Source of the DNA: Utricularia gibba
Lineage: Eukaryota > Plantae > Magnoliophyta
Direction: 5' to 3'
Length of the DNA: 64,000 nucleotides
Assembly: GCA_002189035.1 (NCBI GenBank)
Contig: NEEC01000011.1
Coordinates: 1,550,001 to 1,614,000, forward strand
Below are positions 20,053 through 42,519 of this stretch, piece after piece. Positions within the stretch are counted from its first letter, which is position 1, and every line of letters starts with the position of its first letter. The position numbers were made by a program, and so were the translations under genes. The notes beneath the pieces are model-generated. The model did not search any database. It was given only the letters and a program-made list of their open reading frames with translations, and had not been told where the DNA came from.

Positions 20053-21244
20053 CTACACTACTTCTCGGGCCGCCGCAAACAGTGAACTCTTTACGAACCT
20101 CCCTTTTATCCTCGGCCGATTCTGCGCGTTCAGCTTTCGAACTTCGTATCTGTTGTAAGGAAAAGAACTGTAACTTCATCTTGAAAGGTTCTGTAACTTC
20201 TTTCCAAGGTTACCTTATCGTTTTGCTGAACAGCCTCGTTTGCCGCTTTTCTCTGTATCGTGAAACCCTCGCTTCTCTGCTGCCATCCGCCGGAGAAGCA
20301 AGTTCTCCGACGTTATCCATGCTGTTTCTCTCGTTTGCTCCCTGTGAACTTTGATGTTTCACATTATTCGGATTAAAGCAAGTGAACAACGCGAATGTAC
20401 TTTGTTTTTATGACCCGAAGAAGCAATTCGACTTAACTGGCACAGAATTCGTACACGTGAAACTAAAATTTGCATTATCTAACTTGTTGTTTCTACTGCT
20501 TAGTATTTGCTGTATCTTAAGTTGAATTATAGTTTCATTACAGGAGCAATAATGAGCCTGGATATCTGAAATATCAAAGGATGATGAGTTCAGAATGCAT
20601 ACCAAGAAGTCGGAGACGGTGCTAGGCTCCGGTCGTTCTCCGGTGATCCACGGCGACTTCTTGCCGTTCCAGGCTAAGATCACACCGGCGTGATCAAGTT
20701 TCAAGAAGGATTTGTAACCCGAAATTCTCTCTTCTTCAACCTTCATTTTTTCGCATGTTTTGAGTTCATCTCCATTCTTCACATCAAGAAAACCAAATCC
20801 TTCTGAACCCTCGAGCAACCTTTGCAAATCAGCTGCGAACTCAGAAGCATCCACTTCACATCGGAGTAGCTCTTCAAAGTTCATATCTTTGCCGAACATC
20901 GCAAGGATAGGATCGAATTCAGGAACCCTGTAAAGAATCTGCTCTTCGTTCTCCTCCTTCGCGAGCTCAAATTCCGGCACTAGATCGACAGTTTTCCCAT
21001 TCCCCCGATTCTTCGCTTGACGCGGGGTTCGAGTTTTTCGCTTGAAACCATGCTGCCATGAAGGCACCGGGGGGTCCACTCCGGCGGTCTTCAGGCGAAT
21101 TCGGTTGTGCCGGCGGGCCACCGGGTTCGCAGAATGAACAGAAGAATCACAGATTTTGCACAAGAAGGCAGCATCTGCTTCGCAATACCAAGAAGCTTTA
21201 TACTCCATGCAGTTATCACAAGCCCGTGAAACAGCATTCTCCAT
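20053..21244 (-). CDS. COL16: CONSTANS-like group III B-box/CCT protein (COL6/COL16-like). Exons 21244-20603, 20341-20214, 20149-20053, 288 aa.
   Basis: Single B-box CDNC..YC.AD.AFLC..CD.SVHSANP.ARRH.R, PSWQHGFKRKTRTPR, LYRVPEFDP, LKLDHAGVILAW....SPWITGERP. The CCT domain REARVSRYREKRQTRLFSKTIR|YEVRKLNAQNRPRIKGRFVK is restored only by splicing 20213-20150. Exon phases are consistent. The symbol marks the subgroup, not a proven orthologue. Confidence 0.92.
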
Positions 21245-21679
21245 TCTTAACAAGATCGCTGCAGACGCGTGGAAACTGTAGTTTCAATTTGGATGAAAAG
21301 GAAGGAATATAGAAGCTCAGAACATTATTATTGTCCGGTACTCGAACTTTGCTTATTTACAACTCGGTCCCTGAACTTGTATTTAATAATTTTTAAGTTT
21401 TTTTTTTACCGCTGATGCTTTCAATTTCTTTTCCATATTAATATAAAATTAATCAATATGTAGGATGTTACAAATTGATTTTTATAGTAAATAATGTATT
21501 CATTCATAATTACTAATAATTATACCTTATAAATTTAAAATTATGTATTATTATTAATTTATATATTAGTAATATAATATAATTTATAAAATATATTTGT
21601 ATTAATATCATATTTTTAAAAAATGGTGTAACTGTAATTAATATTGATAAAAGATAGGTAGATATATATTTAAAATTAT

Positions 21680-21990
21680 TATTCCACGTCACAGGAGAGG
21701 ATAATGCATATAAAGGAATGCGACTTCCCTCCAAAACACATGTTCGTTGCGTCCGGTACTGACAGCGACGTTTGGCTTCACTGATTCTCGGAGAGACACG
21801 GCGCGCGTTTGTTTGTTTGTTTTCATTCTTGAGCTCCCGTGTCCTTTCCTCGGGACACGATAGGGCGGTTAATGCCACCGTGCCGCTTTTTCATTGGCTG
21901 GAATCCACAACTCTATCCGGATGAGCATCGCTTCGCTTCCTCCTCCTTTGTGGCCCCCACCCCCCACTGGAATGGCGAGAGGACCGGCGT
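21680..21990. promoter_or_regulatory. GC-rich proximal regulatory island upstream of the COL gene
   Basis: GC-rich block in AT-rich flanks with CCACGTCA (ACGT element, ~21683), GGATAA, ATTGG (CCAAT box) and GTGGCCCCC (TCP-like). Motif presence only; no functional data. Confidence 0.4.
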
Positions 21991-23345
21991 TTGGGATGAA
22001 GAATTATTATTCCCAATAATATTATTTTTAATTTTTAATAATATTTATTCGATTTTTAGAAAAAGATAACCATTTTTTCTTACTAAAGACATTTATCATG
22101 TTAAATTCTGTAATGGATCCTGAAGACGCACAAGCGAATGGGGTGAGCGTGTGAACTGGGCCCCAGCCACGGGAACTCGTACCGTGAATGGAAACCATAC
22201 ACGAATTGGGGCGAAAGTGTCACTAAGCTTTCAAATTATGCAAACCATCTCCTTGCAGAACATTCAGACCGTGTTTAGGTTTTAAGCACACTGTAATAAT
22301 ACAACACGTGTTTGATAGACATATTTTAATATTTTTCAAAAAATTCAAATAAACAATGGAGTTGAAAAGTATTTTTATATAGAAAATTAATAATTAAAAT
22401 TATGATATCCTAATATAAATAAAAAAAATATACTTTTATATTATACACTAAGGTATAAAACATATCCATGAAATAAAATACAATAAAAATATTAATAGTC
22501 GCCATAGTAGGTCATAAACTCTAAAATTGAATCTGTACATGTTTTTGAGGAGGATAAGTCTTTGAATTGAATTGATCCTGAGGTCAAAATTGAAGATTTA
22601 TGTATAAATAAAAATAAAATTTATAATTGGTTTTTATTATTAATTATTATAAAACTACGGATTCTCTTAAAAATATTATCATTTTAAATATAAATTTAAA
22701 ATATCTACATACCAAATATAATTTTAATCATATGATAATAAGTATTTCTCAAAATACATTATTAATTAAACTACAAATAAGAGAATCATATGCATCGCTC
22801 GTTTGGGCTTTGTATATCTCTCCGTCTTGGGCTCGTGGTCCGGGCAAAAGGTCCGAATCACTCCAATGGATATCCATCAGTCGGTCGGGTTCGGACTCGG
22901 GTGGAATTCAAATTATTTCACGGAGGATACGTACAAGTAAAGAACCCCTTGCGATTTGTAGAGGACCCGTGGCTCCTTGGGTAACAACTTACGGGTTGCG
23001 TCTAAAACCGCCTTCCTAAAATTCAATGATTTTCACATTGAATATTTCTAATTGAAAGTATTACAATTTTAGTATTTCTAGTAACTTTATTTGATAAAAA
23101 TTCAATTGTAAAATACCCATCTTAGATATATTTTCTTTTTTTTATTAATATTTTCCTGGAGAAGGGTGTTTCAACGAGTGTAATAAATGGAGAATTGAAT
23201 TGGAAGAAGCTTTTGAACATCGATCTGTACAAGGAAAGTGTTACCAGTCGCCTTAAAATTAGCGTATGTACAGACAGGGCATGAGAAAGAAGATGAGACA
23301 ACAACAATCAGACGTCACAAATTCTTTACCTTCGTCGGAATTTGT

Positions 23346-23960
23346 TTACGCGAGGCCGCGAGACATCGCCTCATACTCAGCCGCTGCGCAGATGCTCAGA
23401 TTATCCAGGCGGCTGAAATCTACCCAGCCAAACCCGAATCCGCGGTCTCGCTCGGCCGGGGGTTGCCCGGAGCCGGAATCGTTCGACGAATCCCACGATT
23501 CCGCTTCGAAAACCGACTCGGGTGACTTGTGATTTGGTATAGGAAGGAAACTGGAATCTGGGCTTAGCTTGTTCTTCAGTTTCTCCTCAATTTCACGCTT
23601 CTTCGCCGCGTAGGCCTCCGCCGCCTCCTCGGCGGTGGCGTAGGTTCCAAGCCAAATGCGCTTCCCCTTACGGCCGGGGTCCCTGATCTCCGCCGCGAAT
23701 TTCCCCCATTTCCTCCTCCGTACGCCGACGAAATTGCGATTCTCTTTCGGCAACCGGAAACCCACAAATTGACCGGAAACGGAACCCAATTCCCTTGGGT
23801 CTTTCACCGGCTTCAGGAGGAGAATCTCGTGGATTTTTCTCTTTGAGTTCTTCTGGGGTTCCTCGAATTCGTCGGAAGAAGAATCGGTGGCGTCGGGATC
23901 GGAATACGAAACTCTGATTCTCGAGACGCAGGCTTTCTTCCTCAGCTTCAGATCTCCCAT
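23346..23960 (-). CDS. CRF: Cytokinin response factor-type AP2/ERF (CRF10/11/12-like), intronless, 204 aa
   Basis: CRF domain [27 protein letters not shown]2 domain [19 protein letters not shown]...[17 protein letters not shown] with the KKRE-type shortened helix end, and SPESVFE motif. ATG at 23960; TATA-like sequence at ~24028-24033. Confidence 0.92.
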
Positions 23961-26900
23961 GTAATCAAACAAGCAACAAGAAATTCAAAAAAAATCAAAG
24001 CATGTTTCGAATTCCAGCTTCCGGAGTTTATAAAGGGAATATTACTCGGCCTCCTCTTTCGAGAATATTCCTGCGGCATATCACTATTGCGTAGGCCCAA
24101 TTAAAAATTAAGGAGACGATTCACGATTAACATAATTAAAATTGAGATTATTAAAATTAGAATTTAAATAAAGGCAAAATATTGTCTTTAGTATTAGAAT
24201 TTTTTTTGCATATAATTTCGATATAAGGAAATCACGTCAAAAAATTCTAACGTTGATAAACTTAATAATTAATATAAATTATATATTTCGTCTCAATTAA
24301 TAAAATCGATATTCAACATTCTACGTATCCATTATTTGAATGATGTTTCAACATAATTAACCCCTAATTTTATATTCTAAACGTTTTTTTATTCTTCATT
24401 ATTTGAATGTTGAACATAATTAATTTTCACTATTCAATAAACTAATCATAATGATTTGAGGGTCAAAACTAATTATAACTTATCAAAATAATTTTTTTAA
24501 AAAAAACTGTCTAAAAACACAATTTAGGAGTAAATTTTTTTAACGATGACGATTTTTTTTAAAAAATTATATTTTACAATAATTTAAAACGATAAAGACT
24601 TTTATTTTTTTATCACTAGAAATCAATCCTTAATTAAAAATTTTTGATTGAGTGTATGTAAGAAAATGTGGTTACTTCGGAAGGGGGACGGGGAGTCGTG
24701 CATGTGATGCTTATCTTTAGAACGAAATGCGCAATAAATTTATGCCATTGTTAAGACAAGAACGAGAATCCGGTGAAAAATAGAATATCCTATTTTTTAA
24801 TATGAATTGGTTGGATCGATAATATTTTTTTGTTTAGAAAAAAATATGCAATTGATTAGACATTCATGAACATGATCTTGTGCCCCTTTATTGATTGTTT
24901 TTTTTTGTTTTGGAACAAGTTGGTCATGAACAACTGTACATTTCGGTTTGATAGCACGTCGTTACTTGTCTCTGTTTGTATTTAAGAATCGTACCCCATT
25001 AAAATTTTTTATTTTTTATTGAACGACAGAGACACATTTCGCTATTTTTTTATGTTTTCGTGTTATTAAAATAATCTGGACATTTTCTGCCGGTGCATCG
25101 GCCTAAAGCGTTTTGGGGGGCATATATTTCAGATTGCGGGCATCCGGCCCATAGTTTAACCCAATGGGTTGAGTTTGAGTCATAATCCGGGTCTCGTTTT
25201 CATACACCAAACAATCACATAATGAAAAAATCAAAGTAATATAATTAAATATATAATAAATTACGAATCACTAATAAATGAGAGTGAAGTTAATATTTTC
25301 GAATGAAATTCATGTTTATTATGTACTTAAACTTTAAATTTTGTGTGTTTTTAATTTCAACAGGGGCAATGAAATCCCAGCACGTGCAGCGGAGTCCCTA
25401 ATTCGGTCCAACCGAGCACAATAAGAATGCTTGCCGCCGGCGGATGTCCTCCTGGGCAGGGCATCTTCTTCCTGGAGAGGAAGGTGCAAAGCAATATATT
25501 CTTTCTTTTTTCCTTTTCTGTGTACGCGACGCACGAAATGCATAAATGGGTTGGAACAAATTCCCCAATACATTGTCTTGTTATGTTCCTTTTCATTTCT
25601 TTTGATTCCCTTAGAATTTTATGATCAATCATGTATATTTGAAATATGTTCATCTCTCTCCATCAAAATTTGTTTATCATAAAAAATTTCATTGCAAAAT
25701 AAAAAAATTTATATGCCTAATTAAAAGACTGTATTATTTCATAAAATTTCATTACAATATTTATTTCTTTTAAATTGATATATAGAAGATGATCATTTTA
25801 CAATGAAATTTTTTAGGATAATCATCTTTCAAATTTTGGTGGAGTGATTTGCCCATGTTTCAAATTGGCCCGATTAATAATTGGATACCACTAAAAATTA
25901 TGCATGATGATTTAATTAATAATGTATTTGAATGATTCGTATTTAAATAGCATAATTTATTTTAGTAAAAAGATTTTGTAAATATGTTTGAGCTTTATTT
26001 ACTTATTTAAAATATACAAAAAACTAAACCGAAAAAAAGTATGACACGAGCAATGTCAATTTGTTAAAGGATACACACGATCACGGGTTAACAAATTCAT
26101 ATGATGTACATAATTGTGTAATTAAATATGATAATAAGAGTGCGTGTCGGACATTGATTTATAATTCGATGGGAAAACCGATTAGCCAACAGGCCAACTG
26201 AACCGCTGGTAACATCCATCTCTGATCCATTTTCTGTCGTCTTAGGGCCTACGCAGCGACCTGTCGGTAGTAATAATACATTAGATACAGTCTCGTTCAA
26301 ACAAAGCGACGAAATCTCCTCAGTTGCCTGAATAACACGCCCCAGGAAGTGATTGGGTGCCGTACCAGAAAGTCATCGCCCCTCTTCTCCCACGCCATCA
26401 TCAGTTAGGAATACGTTTCATTACCAGACGTATCCACTTTGGTGACGTGCCCCGCAGAATAAACAATTCATGACGGGGAGTGGGTGGGTTTTCCCATTAT
26501 CCTTTGACTTTGATCGGGTTTGGACCCGATTCGACAACGAGAGATTAGAACCCAAGAAAAGGTGAACGGAAGACAAGGGTTGGTCCGCGGTCGGATTCTA
26601 TCCACTATTTAATATTCTTTATACACGGTTTGAAGTCCCTGCTTCCAGAAACTAGGGTCGCTTTTTCTCACCAAGAAAAAGAAAAAAGAATTCAAGTTTG
26701 CACCTTTTATTCCCCACCCGTCATGGAAACCCTGTGTGTGTGTTTGGACTAATGCGAAAGAAACCCGTCATCTTGTACTACTTACTCCCTTTGTTTCAAT
26801 TATTACAGTAGTTTAATTAAAAAGTAGAAGTTATAACACATACAACTCTTAATGTATAGTCCATATGATTTATTTGTTGACTTATGATTTAAAGGATAAG

Positions 26901-28933
26901 TTCAAATTAATTATTATATACTATCTCAACTTTTAATTATCTATAATTTTTACTTCACCTCTACTTATTTTAAATTTACCAATATTTTTACTTAAAACCT
27001 AACATATTTTATTAGTTAAGTTTATTTTACTTATCAAAATAAGTCACCAACTTTTTCAATAAATACTGTATAGACCATAACTAGTTATTTGAATTCTAAT
27101 TATCTAATAATTTATAAATATAAATTAATTAGAATTTATAAAACAAATCGTAAAAAATATACCCTTAGTTCTTCAATAATTAGAAGTTCAAAGTGTTAAT
27201 CATCCCATTGAAGATATAGATGCACTTGGACAGCACCGGCCCTCGTTCAACATTAGTGGGGTTGATACCTCAGATCATATCTTTGAAATGGATAAAGAAG
27301 AGGACTAAGCACATATTTGACATTCATGGCTACTTAGAGCTTCTTAATAACTAGAGCTTGATCAAACTGCCACATCATACAACTTGTGTGACACATTTTA
27401 AACCCTTGTTTTAAAAATATAATTAAAAATTATATTTTAAGAATCAAATACTTCTACAATTATAAAATTCCCTTTCTATATTTTAACTATACTTATAAAT
27501 TAATTAAAAACATTAATATATGCTTAATCATATTTAATTGCTTCCCATTTACATGTAGATGATGATAATGTTTTTTATGAATATTTTGATTTTAAGTTTC
27601 AAAATTCATCTTTGGAAAATTTTTTCTAATAAAATAAAATTTGAATTTTTATATCTTATTAAAGATGATAAAGAAATTTTCCATATTGCTTACTTTTTTG
27701 AAATATAATTTAATCGTATTTATTAAAAAAAACTAGTTTTATAGTATATTTATAAAAGAAGAAAATATTACGAGCAAATCCTAAAAATATTGCAAAAATT
27801 TTATTGAATTTATTACATTTTCATCTTAATAATTAAATAAAGATTAATTACAAAAATTATATTATTTGCTTTTTACGTATTTCAAAAATATGTTTGTAAT
27901 TAGTCATTTAAAATTTATAATATATAATTTATTCTGTTAAATAATGTAATATAATTTTATACTAAGTCACAAAATAGTTTAGTAATCTCATAATTTATTC
28001 TATTTATTTAATATTAAACTTAATTATATTTTATATAATTAAAAACACAAATTTAAAATGTAGAACATGCCTTAGTTTCCACCGGGGTGGGTATGTATCC
28101 CAATCCTATGTATGTATAGTCGTCGAAATGTTCGGTCAACTTTTTTATGATATTTCAAAATCAATTTGGAATTTTCAAGACGATTTATTGAATATTTAAA
28201 TTCGTAATAATTTAGGATTCCGTGGTGAAGGGACCGGAACCCGCTCACATGTGCGGTGCAATAAAACAAGGGAGGGTTTCGGTGTGGCCCACCGTAACTG
28301 ACTCCGGACTCCAACTCCAATTCCATTCCGCTTAATAGTCCGGAATTCAAATATTCTTCCACCAAATTCTTTAATAAAGAACAAAATCGAAGAAAAGCAA
28401 AAGTCGAGTGCAAGAAATCTCCCGCTTACATTTTTCTAGAAAAAGCCATGTTTTGATTTCTTGTGTGAAAATATCTCGATGCGCCCGGTCCATCCTGTCC
28501 TTGTTTAACCCTTGATTTTTATTTCCAATTAATAAAATTAGCTTTTATTTTTATTTTTTGGGGGCACATCAAATCATGGGATGGCTCGTGTTCAATTAAA
28601 TTAATGACCGTGCCGACAGCGTGCAATTTATGTATGTATAATGAATGAATTTTGTAGTAAAATATTAAAATAATTTGTGGCGAACAATATAAATTGATGT
28701 GATAAATCAGAATTATTAGAAATGATTTTAAAAATTAAAAAATGCTAACCAACCCTAACTCCCATCCAACCTGATTGAAACGCCGCAAAGGGGCGGAGAA
28801 AAGTAGGGGGGAGGCGAGACGATAGACACACGTCAAGGCTAAGGCATATGCCGTGTGGTGTGGACCCCACTTCCACCATGTCGCTTTCACCCGTCTCCCT
28901 GCCATCCCCGATTCCCGAATTGCTTTTCGCTAC

Positions 28934-28940
28934 TATAAAT
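28934..28940 (+). promoter_or_regulatory. TATA box of the At1g13360-like gene
   Basis: CTATAAATA about 90 bp upstream of the ATG at 29031, downstream of an ACACGT element (~28828). Confidence 0.55.
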
Positions 28941-29030
28941 ACTCAATTCTTCAGCCCACCGGCGTTTCCCATACTTTCCGTCGACGGAATTCCCTCCGGC
29001 GATTCTCTGATCATCTTATAGGTTTCTGAA

Positions 29031-29562
29031 ATGGAGTCCTCGAGCGAGAGAAAACGTGTGAGAGATTTGGAAGAGGAGACGGTGCCGCCAGAGGCGAAAC
29101 GATTGCGAGAGAATATTCTCGAAGATTTAGATACGGAGGCGGAGGAAGTCACGGCTGCGGCGGACGAACTCGATCGCTTCGTCGAAAGCTTTGAAAGGGA
29201 GATTACGGCCGCGGAGGTTGTGGATCTGACGTCTGAGAACGGCGAATCTGCGTCAGATCTGTGTTACTTGTTGGGAGCGTCGGACGACGAGCTCGGACTG
29301 CCGCCGACGGCCGATTCTTCTCCGATTGTACTTGATAGGAGTTACGGCTTCGAGGAGGATGAGGTTGGTTTCGATGCGTCGGTTTTCGCGGGCGAGGTTT
29401 GGGATGCGGATTCGTTCGGTTTTGGGTTCGGATACGGGTTGGGGAACCTGTGGATGGTTCAGAGTTCGAATACGTGGCCTTAGATGGGCTGTTCGATTAT
29501 TCGGATATGGGTATCAGGTCGGGTGATGGGTTCGTAGATCCGAGACTCTGCCGGCCCGATAG
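29031..29562 (+). CDS. Uncharacterised acidic plant protein (At1g13360/At3g25870-like), intronless, ~177 aa after correcting two 1-nt frameshifts
   Basis: RKRVRD...PEAKRLR, LDRFVESFEREI and DLCYLLGASDDELGLPP in the track ORF. The family C-terminal motifs EYVALDGLFDYSD and RSETLPAR* continue in two successive shifted frames, ending at TAG 29560-29562. Confidence 0.85.
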
Positions 29563-31863
29563 TCGTTAGAATTTGTCAAATATCGATTACCAAACGTGCA
29601 GCACAGCATGAGGGAATACTCCTAAATATAGAATCTCTTTATTTGTTCTATCTCTATTTTTTTTCATTTCGATTTAAGTCAATTACATTAGCTAATTACC
29701 AAATATGTTGTTTAACTATATTATTTCTACTTGAAAACAACTTGACCTGAGTAGTTTTCATGTGATAACCGAACAAATATATATCTATAAATAGAGTAAC
29801 CTCATTAGTCATTACTAAATAAAATTTTTATTTATAGTATATTAAATACTATTTTATCTTAATTAATATATATTAATTTTGAATTTTTTGAAAATTGATA
29901 ATTCAAATTAGTTATTAAGACAATTTTTATTTAATATTTAATTAATAATTAAACGCAAGCCTATATATTAGTTAATTGTATAGTACAAAATAATATGTTA
30001 TCGTTTTTCATTCCAGTTATCAATTTTTTTTTCTCATGGTTTATTTTTCATATTTTATAAAAACTCGCTTTGATACTCAAAAATAATTTTATTAAATTTA
30101 ACTATTATTAAATATTATAAAATATTAACTATTTTGATTTTTTTATAAAAAAATTTGTTTAATTATTATTATTATTAATTGAATAAATTTTATATAAATT
30201 TAATAACATAAAATTTGTATTAATAATTAAATATGTTGTGAACGATATTTTTAGTATGTGATAGATAACGTAAGAATGATCATATATATAAATGACGTAT
30301 AAAATGTAAATAATTTACTAGGGGTAATGGGTTGTCACTCATTTGAGATTTTTCGAAGACTTGGAGATCGATTTTGGCAAATTTATTTATCTAATAAAAC
30401 GATGATAATGGAAAAGAAAAATTAAACGAAATAAAAGATATTTTCATATTAACTGCGAAATGCCTTTCAATTCGGCATCCCATGTGGCATGGGCACATGA
30501 GGTGGTGTCATGATTTCATTTGTGTCATCTGTCGATGAACCTCCATTGTGACCAAACCAAACTACATGGGGCAGTGTGTCGGGGACATGTTATTAAATGA
30601 ATAATGCACACGTTACACGTATGTTATGAATTTAAAATTATGATGATCGTTGTAACATATAAATTGCTAGTTTTTTTTAATAAAAGGGTTTATTATAGCA
30701 ACATATAAGTTGCTGGCTTTGTAGCCTGATATCAACCACCATCATCACATTTTTTAAAGTGGTGAATTTTGTATTATTATTATTATTAAAAAAATTTGAA
30801 GCCAATTTTTATTTTATGATAAGAAAAGATAAATTAGGTACATCACGCTATTTATTTTTACTTTTAGTTTTTTCTAAAATTAATTTAAAAAATTTCTCTC
30901 ATTTATCATATCTTGTCAAAACTCTCATCATTCTTGTCATTTCATGTAACATGTATGTTTTTAGTTTTATATTTATTTATAGTTAAGTAGTTGAATTAAA
31001 TTTAAACACGACAATTAGGTTTGGTTATCACACAATTAAAGGTTTTGTTTTCAAATCTGAAAATGGGGAGTTTCTTTTGGTGTTAAACTTGTTGGAAATT
31101 TGAGAAATTTTGTCAAATTGTTTTGTTTGCTATTTGTTTGCATGGAATATCTTTTTTTATTATTATTTGGATGTTTGATAAACTGAAATTGAATATATAT
31201 TTGCATTATTTATTTTTATTGTATTTGTTGGTTGTTTGTTTGTTAAGTAACAATATTGAAGTAAAAATATGGCTGTTTCTAATGGAAAAAGGAAGAAGAT
31301 TATGCCATCCATCTAACAAAATATAAATAAGTTATGCCACTAAAATTTTCTTTTTTGAGATTCAAGCACAATTGAGATTTTCTTGCAACTTGACATAAAA
31401 GAGGTAGACAAAAGAGGATTAGTGCATTACATGGAGAACCAGATGCAAGTGTATCATCAAAGTAAAAAATGAAATCTCTCATAGATTTGAGATTCTTCAT
31501 TTTGAATCTTTGTCAAATGAAAAATTTATTAGAATTAATAATTCATATTTCAACTTGAAATTAAATAGTGAAATATATAATAAATTATAAATCAATATTA
31601 ATTGACAAGTTTAATGTTTTCTAATGTGATTCACATTTTCTTATATATTTGAATTTGACATTTACTTGTTCAACCAATTAAATTTTTAATTTCAATAAAA
31701 TCAATATCTCAATGGTAACACTCGAAACCCAACCAACAATTTAAGTCTGTATTTTTATCACATATATGGGGGAAATGAAGGCTCCTTTGTTGTTTTTCTT
31801 TTTTTTTATCATGGGTAACAACATGGATCTCTTTCTATTGTTCAGGTAAAGATGAGTAATGTT

Positions 31864-32245
31864 TGTTGAGACAAATCGATTGGATGACTATCCAAGGTGT
31901 GATGTATAAACTGAAGCGAAAGAAGGAAAGGGGGAGAAGACGAAGATTTCTCCTTTCTGAAGATTGTACCTATCATTCTGGTGTGAACTAGGCCGATTAC
32001 TTTGATCATATGGGCTGCAATGTTCTATTTTCTAATGTTCTTCTTGTTGGGCCTATATAATAGCTCAAACATTAGGTATTTAAATAACAATATTGTAGAA
32101 GTAAACTTTTATTGTTTTGTTTTCTTCATGTAGAAGCGATGATGGTTTATTCTGGCTTCAATTCTTCTTATTTTTCTCTTGTGCTTGGTGCAAATGTTAA
32201 TGTTGATTCATTGCTCATATTTACATTCTGCACACTACATCTACA
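31864..32245 (+). repeat. 5' LTR of the copia element, followed by the tRNA-Met(i) PBS at 32246-32257
   Basis: Starts TGTTG, ends TACA, followed directly by TGGTACCAGAGC (canonical TGGTATCAGAGC); collinear with the 3' LTR. Confidence 0.85.
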
Positions 32246-35200
32246 TGGTACCAGAGCTGTAAAACATGTGGGGTGCAAAGCTAACAACTCTCATTTTATC
32301 TATTATTGTTTGGAAGTGTTTGTTTATTATTAATTGGAAATTATCTGTTGAAAGATGGTGATATATCTGTTTGGAGAACCATCGTATTTGAATATAAATC
32401 TGTGAAGTTTATCACAAATACATATGACACTTAGTTCAAGGGTTATAATTCCACTACCCATATTTGATGGAACCGAATATTATCAATGGGTTCTTCATAT
32501 GACTAACTATCTGAAGACCAAGGAGCTATGGTGGCTTGTTGAAAGAGAGCTTGAATCACTATGGCTTGATAAACCTGCTACACTAGAGCAAATTGTAGCA
32601 TTTGAGAAATATGATTTAAACATGACTACTGGAGTGTGTATTTTGTTTCAAGGACTCACCAAGGACATGTTCAACAAAGTGGAGTACATGACCCTCAAAC
32701 AAATATGGGACAAGTGGAAAGAACTCTATGAGGCAGGCGACTAGTTGAGAATGGTGAATTGCAAAAGCTTGCTCGAAGACTTTGAGAGAATCAAAATGCT
32801 TCCAAATGTATCAATTCAATAATTCTATGAAGTAACATCAAAGATGGTGAGTGATATACTAGCCTTAGTTGGTGATTTGAAGGAAGTAAAAGTGGTTGAA
32901 TGAGTTATGATGAGTATACTGCAACATTTTGAGCTACAACTATGCAATATTGAAGTAGTAGAAGAAATGAAAAAGTTATTTGGAAACAAGATTGAACTTA
33001 CCTATAATGGGTAAACTTCAGTTTTCTGAAAAACGAATTGGTTTGAGAGAACTGGATGCAAATGACATACCCAGAGAGGAAGTTGCTTTGATGACTCGAG
33101 GTGCAAGACCCTACACCAAGAATTCTAAACCTAAAAGATAGGCAACAATTGAAAGCAACGGATCATTAGAAGGGCAAATAAAGTTCTTTTCTGAAGAATA
33201 GTGCCAAGCTTGTGGAAAAAAAAAAATAACATATGCATGCTATACTAAGAAAGTAAATGCATATATGAAGTGTAGTAAAGTCATGCATCTATTAGATTTC
33301 TACTGGTGGCACTCTGATAAGACGTGCAATAAGCGTAAAAGACAAGGACACACTGAGAGAGTATATGTCCAAATATAGGAAACCATAACAACACCAAAGT
33401 GGGAGAAAAGGAACATCAGTCAACCTCCTTCACATATTATGAGGAGGAAAAAGAAATATTTATATACAATGCATCCGATGCGGCTTTAATGACTACACAT
33501 GAAAAAATTGAATGGTGGTTTTTAGATGGTTGCGCTTCACAACACATGTGTAATGATGTAAAGTTTTTAACTGATCTATGGGAATAGAATACCTGGAAAT
33601 GTGGTAGGCTCTATAGGATACATGACAAAAATTTTGGGAAAAATAGCAATACAACTATCAATAAAAAATGGCCTTATACCCATCGACAATGTATGCTATG
33701 CTTCACACCTGGCACAAAATTTCTTAAGTTGGGGCGAGCTAAAACAACAAGGTTTTTTTTTTTTGAATAGCAAAACAATAGTGTTTTAGTGAAATTACCG
33801 AAAAAGGTATAATTCTTCATTACTCAAATTATTGAGAGCAATCTATTCAAGATCAACACTTATGAGTTCTATCATGGTTTTTTTCAGATCATGATTTAGT
33901 GTTATGGCACATGCGATTTGAGCACTATAGTATACCAAACCTCAAGATTCTGCAAAAAAAAAAAAGGTGAATTCAAGGAATTCTCTCATATTAAACTAAC
34001 TAACATAGTGTGTCTAGTATGCTAAAAGGGAAAACAAGCGAGATAACCTTTTAAGCTCAACGACAATAGATCAATGAAAAAGCTGGAGCTAATTCACATG
34101 GATGTTTATGGATCATTTAAAGAACTTTCGTTTGGAGGAAGTAAGTACTTTATACTCTTTGAGCCATTAATGTTGGGTTTATTTCATGAATTCGAAGTCT
34201 CAAACTTATGATATTTTTAGAAAATTCAGAGCTATAGTTGAAAAAAAAAAGTATGAAAATGATAAAAAAAAAATTGAGTTCAAATAATGTAGGAGAATAC
34301 CTCTCAAGTTTCTTAAAGGGCTTATGTGAAAAGAAATGTATTTTGCATAATCTGAGTGCTCCTTACACACCAAAACAAAACAGAGCTAGTGAACATAAAA
34401 ATAGGACGATTCTAGAAATGTTGCGATGCTTATTGATTTAAAAAAAATCTTCCATTAGGTTTTTGGGCTGAAGCACTTAGCACTGCTGTGTTTGTATTGA
34501 ATGTCTTAATTTCTAGAGCCCTGTAAAATATGATATCTTATGAATTGTCGCATGAAAAAAAACTCTCTATAGCCTTAAACAAGCGCCATGAGCATGAAAC
34601 AATAGAATTAATGGTTTCTTATCAAGGAATGGGTTCAATAGGATGAAAGGAGATCACATGTTGTACTACAAACATATCAATGGAGTATACATTTACTTGA
34701 GCATTTATGTAGATAATTTTATCATTAACTCAAAAAATGATTGTGCAGTCAATGATTTCAAAAAAATGTTGATAATTGAATTTTAAATGAAAGACATGGT
34801 ATTGATGCATCATTTTTTAGGAATGGAAATTCATCAAAAGGAAGGTATAGGAATTTTTATTTTGCAAGAAAATATTGATAAAACAAGGTATGCCAGAATT
34901 AAATGCTACCAAAACTCTCTTAGATTGCAAAGTTATGGTGAAAACCGATGAAAAGGAAACTAAGGGAGATGCTCATCTCTATCGAAGTATAGTTGGCTCA
35001 TTGATATACTTGACGCACACTAGACCAGACCTATCTTTCAATGTAAATCTCCTATCAAGATACATAAAACAATCAATGATGAGTCATTTGAAGTGTTCAA
35101 AGAAAATGCTTAGGTATGTTTAGGGAACACACAATTTAGGACTCATGTATCCTAATCATGGTGAAGGTAATAACTTATTACTTAAAGTCTATGTCGATAG

Positions 35201-35716
35201 TGACTTTGCGGGATCAAAAGAATTTTAAAGCACATTCAAATTTGTCATCTATTTGAATGAAGCACCTATTTCTTGGTGCACAAAGAAACAAAGTGTGATA
35301 GCTCAATCTATTGCATAGGTAGAATACATATCTATGTGTTATGCTGGAAATCAAAGTGCGTGGCTTAGACAGGTGCTGGAGGAAATTGGGCTTAAGCAAG
35401 AATATAGTACATAATTTTATGTTGACAACAAAGCTGTCATTGCTATAGCTAAGGAACTAATGCATTTTCGAAAAGCGAAACATATCAAAGTCAAATACTA
35501 TGTAATTAGAGACTATGTTAAGCACAAGATCATTTAACTGAGGTACACTAAAAGTGATAAATCAGCATCCTTATATTCTGAGAGACTGATTAAGGATGAA
35601 AAATTTGAGATTTTTAGGTACATTGGAAGACAAAAATTCAAGATTTTTAGTGTGCAATTGGGTCTGATTTAGGAAGAAAAATACGAAAGATTCACCAAGC
35701 CAATTGCTAGGGGAAG

Positions 35717-36036
35717 TGATGGGATGATTCGACTAGATGGATATCCAAGGTGTGATGTAGAAATTGAAGCGAAAGAAGGAAAGTGGCATTAGACGAAGGT
35801 TTTTCCTTTTTGAAGATTGCACCTATCATTTTGTTGTGAATCAGGTCGATTACTTTGGTCATATGGGCTACTATGTTGTGTTTGATTTTGCCTTGCTTGT
35901 TGGGCCTCTGTAATAGCTCAAACATTAGGTATTTATGTAAGGATGTTGTAAAAGTAAATTTGTACTTTTTTGTTTTCTTATATTGTAGCGACGAGGTTTT
36001 ATTGCTCAGATTTACATCCTGCACACTAAATCTACA
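35717..36036 (+). repeat. 3' LTR of the copia element, preceded by the polypurine tract at 35709-35716
   Basis: AGGGGAAG then TGATG...; ends catcctgcacactaaatctaca like the 5' LTR. 9 mismatches in the first 34 aligned bases. Confidence 0.85.
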
Positions 36037-37225
36037 CTGTCATTTCTTCTTTCAAATGCATGGGATTTTCATGTTAATTTACTTTTTTGGTGAATCTCAA
36101 GGAATCATCAAGTCCCTAGCGATGATAAGTTTGTCAGAAATTGGATGCGAGACCTTTTTGTGGTGGGTGTTGGATTGTAAGTTTCTTATATGAATGGTGA
36201 GCCAAATTTTGTTTAATAGATGTTGTATCAGTTGTAATGATGTGGGGAGTTATGTAAAAGAATGAGAATCGCTTTATGATGCAGCTGTAGTGGGCCGCCC
36301 TCTATGGATCGTATAAACAGGCCCACAACCTGCTGGTCTCACTCCAAGAAACCCACCAAACATAACGGTTACCGTTATGAACCCCTGAAGCTGAAGCCGT
36401 GAAGAAAAGCAAGGGAGATTACTAAGAAAACAGAAGAATTCTTTTCTCCGACGCAGCAGAAAAATGAAAGGCTGGAATGAGCTCTCTCTCTCTAACAGAC
36501 TCATCGAGTGAGTTGGAGCGAAATTTTAGTCATTTTTATCAGTTCTGTTTTCGCTATTACCCTGGTACGGGAATGGGGCAGACTATTAATTTGCTGTGTT
36601 TAGCTTCTTGAACCTGATTGGAACTGTGATTGTTCCTGTAATTCTCAAACGTGATAGTGAGTGAAGCTGTTCAGCCTGGTGTGGAGCACCCGACGTTTTT
36701 CCCGGAAGGATTTTCCTGTTAAAATCTTGAAGTTCTATTTTTGTTGCTGTTTAGTTACACGTTGCAGGCGCAAATTCATTCATTCGCCTGAGAGTGTTCT
36801 TACGGATTTGTCTGGTATTGTTAATATCCTATCAGCAGCAACTCTGTGGGTACTGATTTTTGAACACAGAAAATGGTGATTAGTGACACTTCGATGTTCA
36901 ATGCATTCGAATGTCGGCTGCTTGGCTCCATCTCCCTGTATTTTCCTTGTGTTTTCGTAAAATGGTTTGTCAGACTTTGCTATGAATGCTGGTAATTTCC
37001 TCCGCGCTTCTCTTTTTTGTCGCCTGGGTGTACTTTTGAGCGCTTTCCAGGAATGGTTTATGGTTTTCGTCTTTTCTACCACCCCTGTCTCGAAGTAACG
37101 GAAATGGACGGTTTGATTTGGCGGGTGCAGTATAAAAGAAGACGACACAAAACATTCAGTTCACTTCGCTCCTCTTCTTCTTCTTCTTCAACTGGAAGAC
37201 GCAGAGTTCACACACGGTTTCTCTC

Positions 37226-39071
37226 TTGGATCGTCGGATTCCACAATTGCCCCTCAAACCTCCTCAGCAAGGTAAAACAAACTTGCGATTCTCCTCTGCT
37301 GGAATCCAAGAATTCGCTGCCGGCAATCCAAATGGTAAGGGAATCCAGAGATCGTCCCCACCCACAATCAAGAACCCCCCGCCAGTAACCAAAATGATAG
37401 AAGAAACTGCGCGCCCTCACCTGCCGGAATCCAAGAACACATCCCTGGAAAAGAAAAGATCCCCTGCAGACAAAGGGAAACGACCCATGGAATATCATGA
37501 TGCTTTGGAAGTTAATGAAGATGAAGCAGCTCCGCGTCCCTTTGTAGACAAAGGGAAACGTCCCATGGAATATGATGATGATAGCTTTGGCATGGAAGAA
37601 AACGGAAAACCTCCTGAGTTGAGCTTCATCGATCTCTTTTCTTTCAATTGATTTTCATTGATTCTCTTTTCTTTTGTAGCTACTGACTCCCAATTGTGCA
37701 TACAGTGACGTCGGCGTCGGACCTGATGATCTGAAGTTTCATCGGAAACTGACTGTTTACGACCAACGGGCGCTGCGGATTTCTTGCGAGGAAGCCTGCA
37801 TTCTTACCGGAGATCCGCGTCTGAGAACTCCAATGGTTCAATTCATCCCCATTGATTCATATACAACAATAGTCGGTCTCCGCGATACCTCAGCCCGTCT
37901 ATACGAAATGACGATAACCACCAGAGGAGTCACAGCAAGAAGAAGAGTGTACGATCTTGGTGGGGATTGGGGGAAATTCGTCGAGATCAATCACTTAGCA
38001 CCCAATGATGAAGTCTACTTCTACGTTGTCAGGAATTACAATTGGAGAGGGAGGCCCTACGTTGTCATACATGCAGCGAAAAACACAGATGAATCCCCTG
38101 AAGCCGTAAGTAATCATCGGAGTAGGGAAGCAGGCCTCCACAGAGATGTAGCAGATGATTTCCCGGAGGTTTTCAGTGGTGAGCAGGAAACTGAAGAGCT
38201 GGGAACGTCTGAAATGGACCTGGGTGATGGGATCATTATTCCCAGACTTCCTGATTTCAAGTGCACGCCAACAGAGTTGGCCCTGCACAGAATGGCGTTG
38301 AAGGATACGCTTAATGACCCGCAATTTTCTAGTATGATGTCCAGCGCAGCTGCGTCGAGCGAGTATACAAAGGGGGTGGCGGACGAGATCTGCGAATCGA
38401 TTGTCAAGTCAGAGAGAGCAATCGATTATTTCAAAATGTTAAGCATGTACAGAGAGAAGAATGCGGCGCAGCATGCCAGTTTGAGAACGACGACATCTCC
38501 CAGACAAAAGTTTGCATTTCAATATATTCCTGATGGTGCGACACCGACGGAAAAGGGGATCTGGTAACACTCCTGCTCTAAGTTTTCATTTACAGTATGG
38601 AAAGTTCAACGTTGTAAAAAAAACTGGTTTTTTTGATGGAAAACAGAGGTTTCATATATAAAGCCTACCTTTAAGGTTCTGATGTTGTTTTGCAGCTACT
38701 TCCGGCCACAAGATAGGCGCTTCGTACACCTTCTACAGGAACGCGACATTCCGGACTTGCCGCTTCGTTATGCAGAAGCCTATGCTCTCACTATGGATGA
38801 AGTAATTCTTCGTCGTCCAAGGACGATATACCGAAAGCAATTCACAGGGTATGATCTGAATGGGATGGCATATATTCTGGAGCTCACCAACTGGATAGAC
38901 CCAGATGGACAAATTCACTATGTGCTGAAGAATCAGTGGAAGAACTTCCTCGTTGTGCATTATCTATCGCCAGGGGATGAAATCACTTTCTACCAGCTCC
39001 ATGGCTCTCGTCCCGATGGCGAATTGTGCGTCGCTTTGAGGTTTTTCAAACGGCCAAAAGGCAAGCGATGA
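37226..39071 (+). CDS. Divergent protein with two B3-like domains (REM-like architecture). Exons 37226-37617, 37706-38563, 38696-39071, 541 aa.
   Basis: Two phase-2 GT-AG introns join three track ORFs into one intact frame (1626 nt). B3-like 1: KFHRKLTVYDQRALRI...YDLGGDWGKFVEINHLAPNDEVYFY. B3-like 2: RFVHLLQERDIPDLPL...YVLKNQWKNFLVVHYLSPGDEITFY. The first donor (GA|GTTGAG) is weak. Confidence 0.72.
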
Positions 39072-41516
39072 CCACCATGAAGAGCTCCATTCTTCCGTAT
39101 CAACAGGAGCCTCATGCTTCAGTTGATTCACAACTTTCTCTCAATGCCCACACACTGACTAAATCTGAAAAATAGGTTTCGGAAGGAATTCAAATGCATA
39201 CTGAGTGGGTTTCATACTCGCATTCCTCTCGCCTCATCAATGGGTTCACCAAAACTAAAACTGCCGCGATGCTAATGCCGGAGATGCCAAACCTCGCAAT
39301 CGCCACGGCGGCTCAACCAAACACCGCAATCAGCATTGGAGAAGTCGATAGCCCAAATGAATTGCATTTGGGGCGCTCCTTACGGGGATTGTAATTTGTA
39401 TTATCAGAATGGGCCTGTCCACATTTATCGTCCTCAAAGCCCATTTTAGAATACCCAACAAGGAAAAAGCCCAGGCGAAAAGTTTAAAATATTCACCATT
39501 TTCATGGTTGTGTATTATTTGGAAACATGTCCATTATATGTGTATATTTCACACAATAAGATCAAAAATTAATATACAAGATGATCATTTTTTCATTTTT
39601 ATGCACATATATATGATAAAAATAATTTATTCTTAAAACGTCAAAATATTCATTCTTTATTTGCACGATATTGTATATTTAAGATTTCAAATCTTCATTA
39701 TTTTATATTTTCATCTTTCGATTAAAAAATCTAATACAATATTAATAGACTCTTACTATTTAAGAATATTCTCTTTATTATTCATAATTAATATGAGATA
39801 TCATAACTAGATACTTGATCTTACATTTTAAATAAAACCATTGTGAACAATTTGTGGTTGGAATCATTGGATCCTGTTTTAAATTGCAATTAAATAATTA
39901 TTTTTTATGTTTTTCTTATAACATATTTTTAATATGAGTAGTGGAAACATGGCAACTTTACAGTTATTATTTCTATTTTAGAGATATTACAATTTAATTC
40001 AATCTATAATATTAAGGATTCACGACATCATAATTCAATTATATTTTTATAACAAAGGTCATGATAGTAGAGATAAATATGGCCCCGTATGGAGACTGCT
40101 TGAAAAAACGGGAAAAAGACGCGTCACGTTTGAAACCTGCTGTTAAAATAATATTTCTATGACCACAAATTTGAAACGCAAAAGAAATATTAAATAATTA
40201 ATCAGCAAGTTGAAAGATGACATGGAATATTAATATTCTCAGATATTTTTGTCTTTATTTGAATATCTGCCCGCAAAACCAGCAACGCCTTCTGTATTCC
40301 CCTTGGCGGTTTTTGTTGATTTTCAACAACACAACTCATTTCCCACATGGCTACCCGACGAAAGTGTTATTAAATACTTAATAAATGTTATTAATGGGAA
40401 TAAATAATAAAAAAAGAATTATTCTGAGATATTTTTATAATTAATATTCGGGATAAGGCCCCGAATCCCATCCATTCAGGTGGCCTGCTGTGTTTACTTT
40501 TCTGGGATGGATATTTATTTTAACTGCTGAAGTCACGATCACAGATTGTGCAATTTGGATAAGGATTGGGGGTGTCACTCTATTTTTTATATCCCAAATT
40601 TATCCATTTATTTTATGAAATGTAAAATTATATTATCCAATCATATGCTTTTCTATGAAATATAGTTTTGTTTTCTTATTAGTAATGATATTTATCTTTT
40701 TAAAGATATATTTGAATATTTAATTTATATTTTTTTTAAGAGATTCGTTGAAGTGATTATCCACTAATGCTAATTTAGATTACTAAATAAATTGATTTCT
40801 CGTATTCTTAGATATTGATAGTTTATAATTTTGATTATTAATATTAAAACTGTGTTTTGAAAAAATATTTGGGTGTTGTTTTTATTAAAAATAATGTTGC
40901 ACTAAACAATGTCTACTTATGTTTTTGTTTTTTATATAAATAATTTTGAATATAGTTAAAAATAAAATAAAAGTACAAATAATAAAATATCAATTCGGCT
41001 TCTCATTTTTATTTTTGCTATCAGAGTTTGCAATTTTCGATCTATTTCTAGTTTTTTTAGAATACGCTTTTCTATTTCTAATTTTTGAAAAAAATTATAC
41101 TTATATTTTTTACTTTTTCAAAAGTAAAAATAATATTCTAAAATTTTCTTTAGTTTACTTAAAGTATTTTTTATTCATTCTAACTATATAACCCAGAGTA
41201 TAATATACGAATTAATCTTTATAATTTATACGAGTTTTCGGCCACCTCCAAATCTCATTATGATTCCATTAAGAACATAACATATTAATGTTCTTACTAT
41301 TTTTCTAAATGATCAAAAAAGATTTCATCTTATTGCATTCGACTAAATGATGATAATTACAAAATAAAATTATAATTGTCTATTTTGAAAAATTAGAATG
41401 AAATTTCTTATTTTATAATAAGAAGTGTTAGTTAATATTAATTCTATGAACATTAAATTATATAATTAATCACACCAAAAAAATATACGCTAGGAACGCA
41501 AACACAGGAAATGTTG

Positions 41517-42519
41517 CTACAAGGCATTGATGATTCTCTGTTTCTTGGTACACTGCAACCCCAACGCCTCCATTTCGCGCATCCTTTTTCCTCGGCCGCA
41601 GGCGCCGCCGTCGCCGGCAGGCACCTCGAAGATGTTCACCCCGAAGAGGCGGACCATCTGAATGGGCTGAATCAGCTGCACGGAACCGACGACGTTTCCC
41701 GGTCTCCAGTCGATGAAGAGCTGCCTTTCCTGCCCTGTCGATCTTTGAAAACAGACGATGTCTCCGGGTCGTAAATCCTTCTCTTTTACAAACCTGCTCC
41801 AGCCTTTGGTTAAAACGTAGCTCTGGCTGCTGTTCCAATACGAGTACCTGAATCTCCACACCTTTCCTCCGGCATCTTCGAAATTCAACAGCACCCCTTT
41901 GGAAATGCTCCCGTTTTGTAGAGGGAAGTGCTTCTCAGCTTGCTGCTTCGGAATCACCAGTCTGTGGCAGTATCGTTGTTAATCCTTCTTCTTAGTTGGA
42001 AAAAGTAACAAAATATGCGTCGATACCTATTGAGTTTCCCAACGTCGCTGGGGGTGACGGCTTTCTCGAATAACTGTTCACGGTAGTGCTCCGCGGGTCT
42101 CACGCCGGGGAAGGCGGAGAGGAAGAAGGGTTTTTTGCCGGCGACGAAGCTTTTCCGGCTATGTTGAAACTCATCTTGATACGTATGTTTTCTCAACATA
42201 TCAACGATCTCGTCCTTGGAATGAGCGTTCAGAAACGCGGCCTCCATTTCGTCTTCCGACAAGGCCTTGAAATTGGTGACGGGTCACGGCCGCGGAACTT
42301 CTGCGCCGCAGTGTCGTAGGCTCTCGCCGCCGTGTCCTCCTCGTTAAAAGTACCTAACCAAATCCGGCGATGCCTCTCGTAGATTTGCGCACCCCATCTC
42401 CCGTTCGGCTGCGGGACCACCCCTTTGAACCTCGAAGACGGCAGCTTCCTCGATTCCACCTCCGCTCCAGTTTCAGTCAACAACTGAGACAAACTATCCT
42501 CCACACAACTCCCTTCCAT
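41517..42519 (-). CDS. RAV: RAV/TEMPRANILLO AP2-B3 transcription repressor. Exons 42519-42027 and 41961-41517, 312 aa after correcting one 1-nt frameshift at ~42283.
   Basis: AP2: [39 protein letters not shown]; linker [20 protein letters not shown]; B3: [16 protein letters not shown]|[14 protein letters not shown]...[27 protein letters not shown]; RLFGV repression motif; KKQRII end. Confidence 0.95.

Follow-up and report, generated by a model that had tools for sequence, protein, structure and literature searches.

Two genes in the analyzed window (the whole stretch of DNA that was studied, 64 kb) carry, within the coding sequence of a DNA-binding domain, an additional short GT..AG gap that is absent from every relative with which they were compared. 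One of them is a group II CONSTANS-like (COL) gene and the other a gene of the RAV/TEM type. The two gaps are probably U2-type spliceosomal introns that were gained independently of each other within the Lamiales lineage of this plant.

Structure of the COL gene and its neighborhood

The COL gene (positions 20053–21244, minus strand) encodes one B-box and a CCT domain, as judged from its translation and from Pfam matches to both, and is divided into three coding exons. Exon 1 (21244–20603) encodes 214 amino acids, including the B-box (PF00643), and is followed by the canonical group II COL intron located upstream of the CCT domain (intron 1, 20342–20602; 261 nt, GT-AG, phase 0). In the database ORFs P0001 and P0002 the reading frame continues past this exon end, and the COL loci found in metagenomes have the same two-exon layout around this intron. 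Exon 2 (20341–20214) comprises 42 codons plus AG and is separated from exon 3 by an extra 64-nt GT..AG gap (intron 2, 20150–20213; GTAACC...AACAG), which splits codon 22 of the CCT domain, an Arg codon, as AG|A. Exon 3 begins at 20149 with an A followed by YEVRKLNAQNRPRIKGRFVKS... and ends with a stop codon at 20055–20053; all of these features are read from the minus strand. Positions 1–21 of the CCT profile (PF06203) are encoded by exon 2 and positions 23–43 by exon 3.

The presence of one B-box and a C-terminal CCT domain assigns the product to the group II type (COL6/7/8/16). Genes of this group have a single intron, upstream of the CCT domain, whereas here a second one is placed inside it; the departure from group II lies in the structure of the gene, not in the protein. 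The best named match was a Cucurbita COL16-like protein, and the best protein match of exon 1 showed 53% identity. In an analysis of 29 distinct exon-1 proteins, the gene was placed among the group II COL sequences, at the end of a very long branch, which makes its exact orthology unsure. By synteny it corresponds to the AtCOL6/COL16-type genes.

A CRF-type ERF gene (23346–23972, minus strand; Pfam AP2), which served as a synteny marker, lies between the COL and RAV genes, and a CRF-like gene was also found upstream of COL, as in the window, in two of the compared loci (L002 and L031). The second marker, used for both synteny and taxonomy, was an adenylate isopentenyltransferase (IPT) gene (4380–5420, minus strand), whose best matches all came from Lamiales (60–65% identity), Genlisea aurea not being the closest; this confirms the order of the plant. 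According to the sesame gene numbers, LG1 and LG2 each carry, at short distances from one another, a RAV gene, two ERF-B5 genes and a COL gene of group II.

Structure of the RAV gene

The RAV/TEM-type gene (41517–42519, minus strand; Pfam AP2 and B3) contains the AP2, B3 and RLFGV parts expected of this type, but its frame is broken, and as assembled it consists of three reading-frame pieces. Reading of the strand and a script revealed a 1-nt loss in a run of C residues (42281–42283), which introduces a frameshift at the end of the AP2 domain (RGRD-x-VTNFK): only 2 nt (42282–42281) are present between the Asp codon (42285–42283) and the Val codon (42280–42278), the first piece runs into a stop, and the second goes on in another frame.

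The second discontinuity is an extra 65-nt GT..AG gap (41962–42026; GTATCG...CCACAG) in the B3 domain. The exon upstream of it ends with ...SDVGKLN plus AG (last base 42027), the Arg codon of GKLNR|LVIPK is split as AG|A, and the coding sequence resumes with an A and stays in frame as far as the stop codon at 41519–41517. The gap falls between positions 15 and 16 of the B3 profile, positions 16–99 being encoded downstream of it (Pfam), and the domain is consequently not encoded in one uninterrupted stretch, as it is in other RAV genes. The closest relatives of the product were RAV/TEM proteins of Lamiales, with 77% identity between the last piece and a Lamiales RAV.

Features common to both gaps

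An earlier note, made from the sequence of this DNA, had reported the COL and RAV gaps with the positions and lengths given above. Reading of both strands and a script check confirmed them, and the translation and Pfam comparisons bore out the further description of their phase (2), of the AG|A split of the Arg codon and of the interruption of conserved peptides. Removal of the gaps restores KTI-R-YEVRK in the COL protein and GKLN-R-LVIPK in the RAV protein, with Pfam positions contiguous across each junction. The A+T content is 63–64% in both, and the G+C fraction is 0.36–0.37, compared with 0.53–0.54 in the flanks. The minimal length of plant introns is about 60–70 nt, a value that both gaps reach; the published median for Genlisea aurea is 89 nt. 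The GT and AG ends, the restored frame, the AU-rich composition and the sufficient length all agree with U2-type introns, while neither donor has a G at +5 and the pyrimidine tract before the RAV acceptor is poor. Judged from these sequence features, both gaps are good candidates for spliceosomal introns, and we infer that they are spliced. Since each is situated in a DNA-binding domain, any failure to splice would yield a null protein.

Other elements of the earlier interpretation did not stand. The shared AG|A split, phase 2 and length of 64–65 nt, to which the note drew attention, are features that any surviving new intron should have. Because neither 64 nor 65 is divisible by three, the gene would work only with exact splicing, and this requirement would account for the AG at the exon end, the GT..AG ends, the purine after the acceptor and the near-minimal length. 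Likewise, the repeat described as resembling a target-site duplication consists of the AG dinucleotide only, that is, the usual AG of the exon end and the AG of the acceptor, and carries no information; no duplication of 3 nt or more was found at the edges of either gap.

It might be argued that one or both gaps are merely insertions in decaying pseudogenes, the 65-nt piece being another lesion in a RAV gene that was already dead. The frameshift in the AP2 domain would fit such a history, and if RAV has recently become a pseudogene, as it may have, splicing of its gap would no longer be required; in addition, protein searches, run exon by exon and not with joined spliced models, revealed no identical or nearly identical product of either gene in the protein collections. 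However, the frameshift is situated in a run of C residues and could stem from an error in the assembly. All three RAV pieces are well conserved and free of stops, their AP2, B3 and RLFGV parts are intact, and the COL gene carries no lesion besides the gap of intron 2. Furthermore, GT..AG ends in a frame-restoring register would arise by chance in approximately 1 of 85 cases (three registers × 1/256), and in both gaps in about 1 of 7000. We therefore regard decay as an unlikely explanation of the gaps.

Internal structure and possible sources of the introns

The two putative introns are built differently. Most of COL intron 2 (20160–20200, minus strand) is composed of two 18-nt direct repeat copies (20160–20177 and 20183–20200) with a spacing of 23 nt and 83% identity (p = 0.002). 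In the RAV intron, the first 57 nt (41970–42026, minus strand) form an imperfect hairpin or inverted repeat with arms at 41976–41988 and 41999–42011; the predicted fold has an energy of −12.2 kcal/mol (z = −3.57), and none of 200 shuffled sequences was as stable. The COL intron has no inverted ends (fold z = +0.66), and no match to Rfam was obtained for either sequence.

An origin of both introns in short MITE- or introner-like mobile elements, whose copies brought or created splice sites on insertion, would accord with the inverted-repeat structure of the RAV intron and with a weak likeness between one intron and the reverse complement of the other (16 of 19 nt). The latter was rejected as a chance match, its p value of 0.006 being uncorrected for 13 tests. 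Against such an origin, the introns show no likeness when compared in the same orientation (p = 0.5), no further copy of either occurs in the 64-kb window, the COL intron is devoid of inverted ends, and no target-site duplication extends beyond AG, which together make this origin quite improbable. The view of the earlier note that the sequences are dissimilar and do not support a single introner family was upheld.

We also searched for DNA from which the introns could have been copied. Alignments and shared k-mers revealed no local template in flanks of 200–1500 nt (COL, p > 0.2; RAV, p about 0.06–0.07 at best). Neither intron was significantly similar to its own flanking exons, and the comparison of COL intron 2 with orthologous exon sequence gave a best p of about 0.04–0.07 among 39 segments (median 0.25). 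Tandem duplication of an AGGT-containing exon segment, listed as a model of intron gain in one of the comparative studies of grasses (PMC1779517, PMC4256211), would find a suitable substrate here, as many COL orthologues read AGG TAY at the site, which constitutes a latent AG|GTA donor; this model was nevertheless rejected, since the intron is not recognizably derived from the adjoining exon or its orthologues. The break-repair (filler DNA) origin put forward in the earlier note was not substantiated either: no flanking direct repeats were found at either intron, and no nearby template was significant.

Absence of the introns from relatives

For both introns the comparison set consisted of relatives outside the plant's own family. 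The genomic comparison of COL was a pattern scan of metagenome DNA, directed at the second half of the CCT motif. The CCT exon was uninterrupted in all 76 plant genomic loci (orthologous or paralogous), which represent 39 distinct CCT segments; a near-complete B-box exon was present in 47 loci, yielding the 29 distinct exon-1 proteins mentioned above, and most of these loci had the usual single intron. This agrees with published gene structures: one intron per group II COL gene in Arabidopsis and sesame, and a two-exon layout in four grasses. In 28 of the 39 distinct segments the codon of Arg22 is AGG or AGA, from which it follows that the proto-splice site of COL existed before the intron.

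The B3 domain of RAV is reported to be intronless in Arabidopsis, rice and moss, all four sesame RAV genes are single-exon genes, and the pepper RAV genes have no introns. The peptide GKLNRLVIPK was unbroken in all fetched relatives whose sequence spans the site, among them ORF-type calls made on short contigs, and none of the fetched relatives had an ORF starting at the position of the RAV intron. With both introns missing from every relative compared, including the neighborhood-matched sesame genes, they look derived in these sequence comparisons; the possibility, named in the earlier note, that they are ancestral or widespread found no confirmation.

The least probable reading, and in our opinion a very improbable one, is that the introns are old, the CCT intron being the intron "after residue 22" of CMF genes, kept here and lost in other group II COL genes or acquired by gene conversion from a CMF paralogue, and the RAV intron having a similar past: many Poaceae and Arabidopsis CMF genes do have that intron (Cockram et al. 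2012, PMC3454399), at a CCT position identical to within a codon, one CMF branch is tied to group II COL genes (PMC3454399), and grass introns were lost over gained by approximately 5.5 to 1, with apparent gains often being repeated losses, but the CMF intron is reported only from genes without B-boxes, with no COL genes in that intron group (PMC3454399), whereas here it would reside in a B-box COL gene whose relatives do not have it (0 of 39 distinct CCT segments interrupted; in grasses, Arabidopsis and sesame, COL genes of group II possess the upstream intron alone), RAV genes from moss to Arabidopsis encode their B3 domain without an intron, and many independent losses would be needed.

The coincidence with the CMF site and the RAV frameshift are two complications that were missing from the earlier note.

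Proposed origin and comparison with known systems

We propose that the two independent gains took place in genes of one conserved neighborhood (IPT–COL–CRF–RAV) and that, in each case, a short, unique, AT-rich piece of DNA (64 or 65 nt) may have arrived at a pre-existing AG|R proto-splice site. The insertion point would in both genes have been an Arg codon within a strongly conserved peptide, and the lengths would be close to the shortest that a plant can splice. The pieces differ in build, with a tandem repeat of 23 nt in the COL gene and an imperfect palindrome in RAV, and are not copies of one element. Such introns would have originated by insertion, through break repair or as a small insertion, and not by copying of neighboring sequence.

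In Daphnia pulex populations, recent intron gains have reportedly been attributed to double-strand-break repair. The resemblance lies in (i) new, short introns of unique sequence within conserved coding sequence, (ii) the lack of a mobile-element family, and (iii) gains that can fall at sites used independently elsewhere. The Daphnia introns, however, typically have short flanking direct repeats, whereas only AG, and no local template, was found here; moreover, our comparison is between species and does not concern polymorphism within one. Introners of algae and other protists are multi-copy families with recognizable ends and target-site duplications. They likewise consist of short inserted sequences that bring splice sites with them or create them, and the RAV intron shares with them an inverted-repeat structure, but the two introns described here are mutually unrelated and single-copy in the window.

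The closest parallels among angiosperms are the isolated gains inferred, as here, by comparison with relatives: about 5 among 3,101 gene pairs of rice, and, across five grass genomes, 118 gains versus 652 losses (PMC1779517, PMC4256211). In contrast to those, the present two are separated by about 22 kb, in a stretch with roughly ten genes. One of these studies, on grass genomes, cautions that what looks like a gain may instead reflect repeated losses (PMC1779517, PMC4256211). In published descriptions of the miniature Genlisea and Utricularia genomes, either no intron loss or a net loss is recorded, but in no case a gain.

As a tentative and rather doubtful extension of these results, this fast-evolving lineage with its compact genome might have created short unique introns (about 64–116 nt) at AG|R sites in genes that are normally intronless or intron-poor, at a rate exceeding that of other angiosperms by one to two orders of magnitude; such introns, the two described here among them, would still be young enough for their origin to be read from the sequence. 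Well-supported recent gains are scarce in flowering plants, in which loss dominates. Two gains at sites that are uninterrupted in relatives would provide clean before-and-after pairs, the ancestral COL site being readable in 39 distinct orthologous or paralogous segments. If the genome-wide count also proved high, the plant would offer a rare system in which to study the birth of introns, and would indicate that genome shrinkage and intron birth can coincide. Since each intron is located in a DNA-binding domain, its retention in the transcript may also provide a further layer of regulation.

Structure of the interrupted genes

Two short gaps, one in a group II CONSTANS-like (COL) gene and the other in a RAV/TEM-type (RAV) gene, look like real introns and, judged from sequence, represent independent, lineage-specific candidate intron gains. 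Sequence reading and Pfam bore out the earlier description of both gaps as being in phase 2 and splitting an Arg codon as AG|A.

The COL gene lies on the minus strand, from its start at 21244 to the stop codon at 20055-20053. Exon 1 (21244-20603; 214 aa with one B-box) is followed by intron 1 (20602-20342; 261 nt, GT-AG, phase 0), exon 2 (20341-20214, ending in ...RLFSKTI + AG), the 64-nt gap or intron 2 (20213-20150; GTAACC...AACAG) and exon 3 (from 20149), which opens with A + YEVRKLNAQNRPRIKGRFVKS... Positions 1-21 of the Pfam CCT profile precede the gap and positions 23-43 follow it. Intron 1 is a canonical intron, since two database ORFs (P0001 and P0002) read on past the same exon-1 end. 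Exon 1, whose closest named relative is a Cucurbita COL16-like protein, is extremely diverged (≤53% identity to any relative found), unlike the CCT motif, which is close to consensus. The exon-1 protein tree placed the gene inside the group II COL set as sister to P0001 (SH-aLRT 94), although its exact position is unsure because the branch leading to it is very long, at 1.83 changes per site.

The RAV gene, also on the minus strand, starts at 42519 with the AP2 domain following, and is coding up to ...SDVGKLN + AG (ending at 42027). After the 65-nt gap (42026-41962; GTATCG...CCACAG), an A, the rest of the B3 domain (Pfam profile positions 16-99) and the RLFGV motif lead to the stop codon at 41519-41517. 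The frame is broken approximately 255 nt upstream of this gap, at the end of the AP2 domain: within RGRD-x-VTNFK only two bases separate the Asp codon (42285-42283) from the Val codon (42280-42278), and the 1-nt loss (at 42281-42283) sits within a C run. The pieces on either side are otherwise stop-free and well conserved, and everything downstream is intact; the frameshift represents either a very recent lesion or an error in the assembly.

In P0005, a plant RAV-like ORF from an ENA contig, an unrelated 22-residue stretch replaces the conserved REQLFEK.VTPS just before DVGKLNR, as compared with its near twin P0006. This may reflect a pair of frameshifts, or some other small rearrangement affecting the same B3 region.

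Intron-like features of the gaps

Both gaps contain 63-64% A+T, and their lengths are not multiples of three. The chance that an arbitrary insert carries a frame-restoring GT..AG is approximately 1/85 (three registers via the repeated AG x 1/256), and by the same arithmetic approximately 1/7000 for the two gaps jointly. Plant introns need AU-richness, and both gaps are AU-rich; in each, sequence reading revealed branch-point-like motifs lying 16-21 nt before the acceptor. Neither donor has G at +5, and the pyrimidine tract of the RAV acceptor is weak. Protein searches were run exon by exon.

Comparison with relatives

JGI metagenome contigs were scanned for the second half of the CCT motif by means of a degenerate DNA pattern. 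Because that half is encoded wholly within exon 3, the pattern matches whether or not a gene carries the intron. This yielded 76 genomic loci from plants (L001-L076; 39 distinct CCT segments). In every one, the motif's first half (...RLF[SAC]K[KTR][IV]R) was found directly upstream and in frame, and none of the 76 was interrupted at the COL intron 2 site. A near-complete B-box exon was present in 47 loci (29 distinct exon-1 proteins), in most of which one intron, as usual, separates the B-box exon from the CCT exon. Five GC-rich (grass-like) loci (L012, L027, L034, L070 and L076) aligned to the query protein without that intron, and represent either contigs derived from transcripts or group II COL genes lacking introns. 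Published group II COL gene structures fit this picture, with a single intron in Arabidopsis and sesame (PMC6288898) and a two-exon layout in rice, Brachypodium, sorghum and Setaria (PMC3454399 Table S2).

The Arg22 codon is AGG in 19, AGA in nine and CGN in 11 of the 39 distinct segments, and an AG|R proto-splice site therefore pre-exists in many of them. Arg22-Tyr23 is encoded as AGG TAY in 19 of the 39, forming a latent AG|GTA donor exactly at the site of the new intron. In many CMF genes (CCT genes without a B-box) of grasses and Arabidopsis, the CCT motif is interrupted by a conserved intron "after residue 22" (Cockram et al., PMC3454399), at a site identical, to within a codon, to that of COL intron 2. 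The CMF intron group includes no COL gene, and none of the group II COL genes sampled has the intron; we therefore read COL intron 2 as a probable second, independent use of the same proto-splice site. That it was instead retained, or acquired by gene conversion from a CMF paralogue, is improbable.

In the case of RAV genes, the B3 domain is intronless throughout the family in Arabidopsis, rice and moss (PMC2688026), the four sesame genes consist of one exon (PMC4967514) and the pepper genes have no introns (PMC11285464). The best relatives in protein collections were Lamiales RAV/TEM proteins, with Phtheirospermum at the top (77% identity). GKLNRLVIPK is unbroken in every relative covering the intron site (ORF-type calls from short contigs with internal Met starts included), and no ORF among them starts at that site. 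The uninterrupted site in all compared relatives (the 76 CCT loci, the RAV proteins and the gene-structure literature) argues, in line with the earlier note, that both introns are derived and not ancestral.

Origin of the inserts

We do not think that the parallels between the two introns are a sign of a shared mechanism. To be tolerated, a new insert whose length is not a multiple of three needs an AG at the exon end, a purine following the acceptor and a size slightly over the plant minimum. Where Arg is encoded by AGR, phase 2 is a consequence of the AG|R site, and the location in the most conserved peptide reflects ascertainment in part, because only there can an insert be placed to the base. 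The repeat that had been called "TSD-like" comprises two bases only. Compared in the same orientation, the introns show no relationship (p=0.5), which agrees with the view that a single introner family is unsupported; a reverse-complement match covers 16/19 nt (p=0.006, uncorrected for 13 tests). No further copy of either intron was detected within the 64-kb window, and neither had an Rfam match. They are also of different build: COL intron 2 consists mostly of two 18-nt repeat copies, 23 nt apart (20160-20177 and 20183-20200; p=0.002), and is unstructured (folding z=+0.66), whereas the first 57 nt of the RAV intron fold into an imperfect hairpin (-12.2 kcal/mol, z=-3.57, with 0/200 shuffles as stable).

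Tandem duplication of an exon as the source of the inserts was unsupported, alignments to their own and orthologous exon sequences being non-significant. These alignments, together with non-significant k-mer sharing with flanks of 200-1500 nt, also left the earlier proposal of break repair without support as regards a local template (the RAV intron versus its flank within 200 nt was marginal, p about 0.06). The internal direct and inverted repeats could be the sort of product left by error-prone break repair.

Rate of gain

Both candidate gains are further cases of a known type of event, not a new kind. Published baselines of five gains among 3,101 rice gene pairs, and of 118 gains versus 652 losses in 25,557 intron groups of five grasses (PMC1779517, PMC4256211), correspond to about one gain in every thousand genes. 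A count of two among approximately ten genes is far above this, but it comes from a window selected from approximately 1,590 read. The published accounts describe a typical intron number, an absence of intron loss and introns with a median of 89 nt in Genlisea aurea, and net intron loss in Utricularia gibba; neither reports intron gain. A genome-wide burst of gain in this genome is possible.

Gene neighbourhood and age of the probable gains

The window is nuclear plant DNA whose spacers are AT-rich and whose genes are richer in GC. The best matches of its IPT gene (4380-5420) are exclusively from Lamiales (60-65% identity; 55-57% to Genlisea aurea), which assigns the window to that order. IPT (4.4-5.4 kb) is followed by COL (20-21 kb), CRF-type ERF (23.3-24 kb) and RAV (41.5-42.5 kb), and a CRF-like gene lies upstream of COL, in the same orientation, at loci L002 and L031 as well. 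Arabidopsis chromosome 1 presumably carries two copies of this order, the first being IPT6, COL16, CRF12 and TEM1, and the second IPT1, COL6, CRF10 and TEM2. The IPT - group II COL - CRF-type ERF - RAV/TEM order (4380-42519) is a conserved neighbourhood. In sesame, judged from gene numbers, RAV, ERF-B5 and group II COL genes are close together on LG1 (SIN_1013634, SIN_1013660/61 and SIN_1013665) and LG2 (SIN_1018312, SIN_1018336/37 and SIN_1018340) (PMC6288898, PMC4967514). The sesame genes of the matching neighbourhood have two exons (COL) and one exon (RAV) (PMC6288898, PMC4967514), and both gains therefore postdate the split from the sesame lineage.

Approximately 2.5 kb from the RAV gene, the plus strand (37226-39071) contains ORFs with divergent B3-like repeats.
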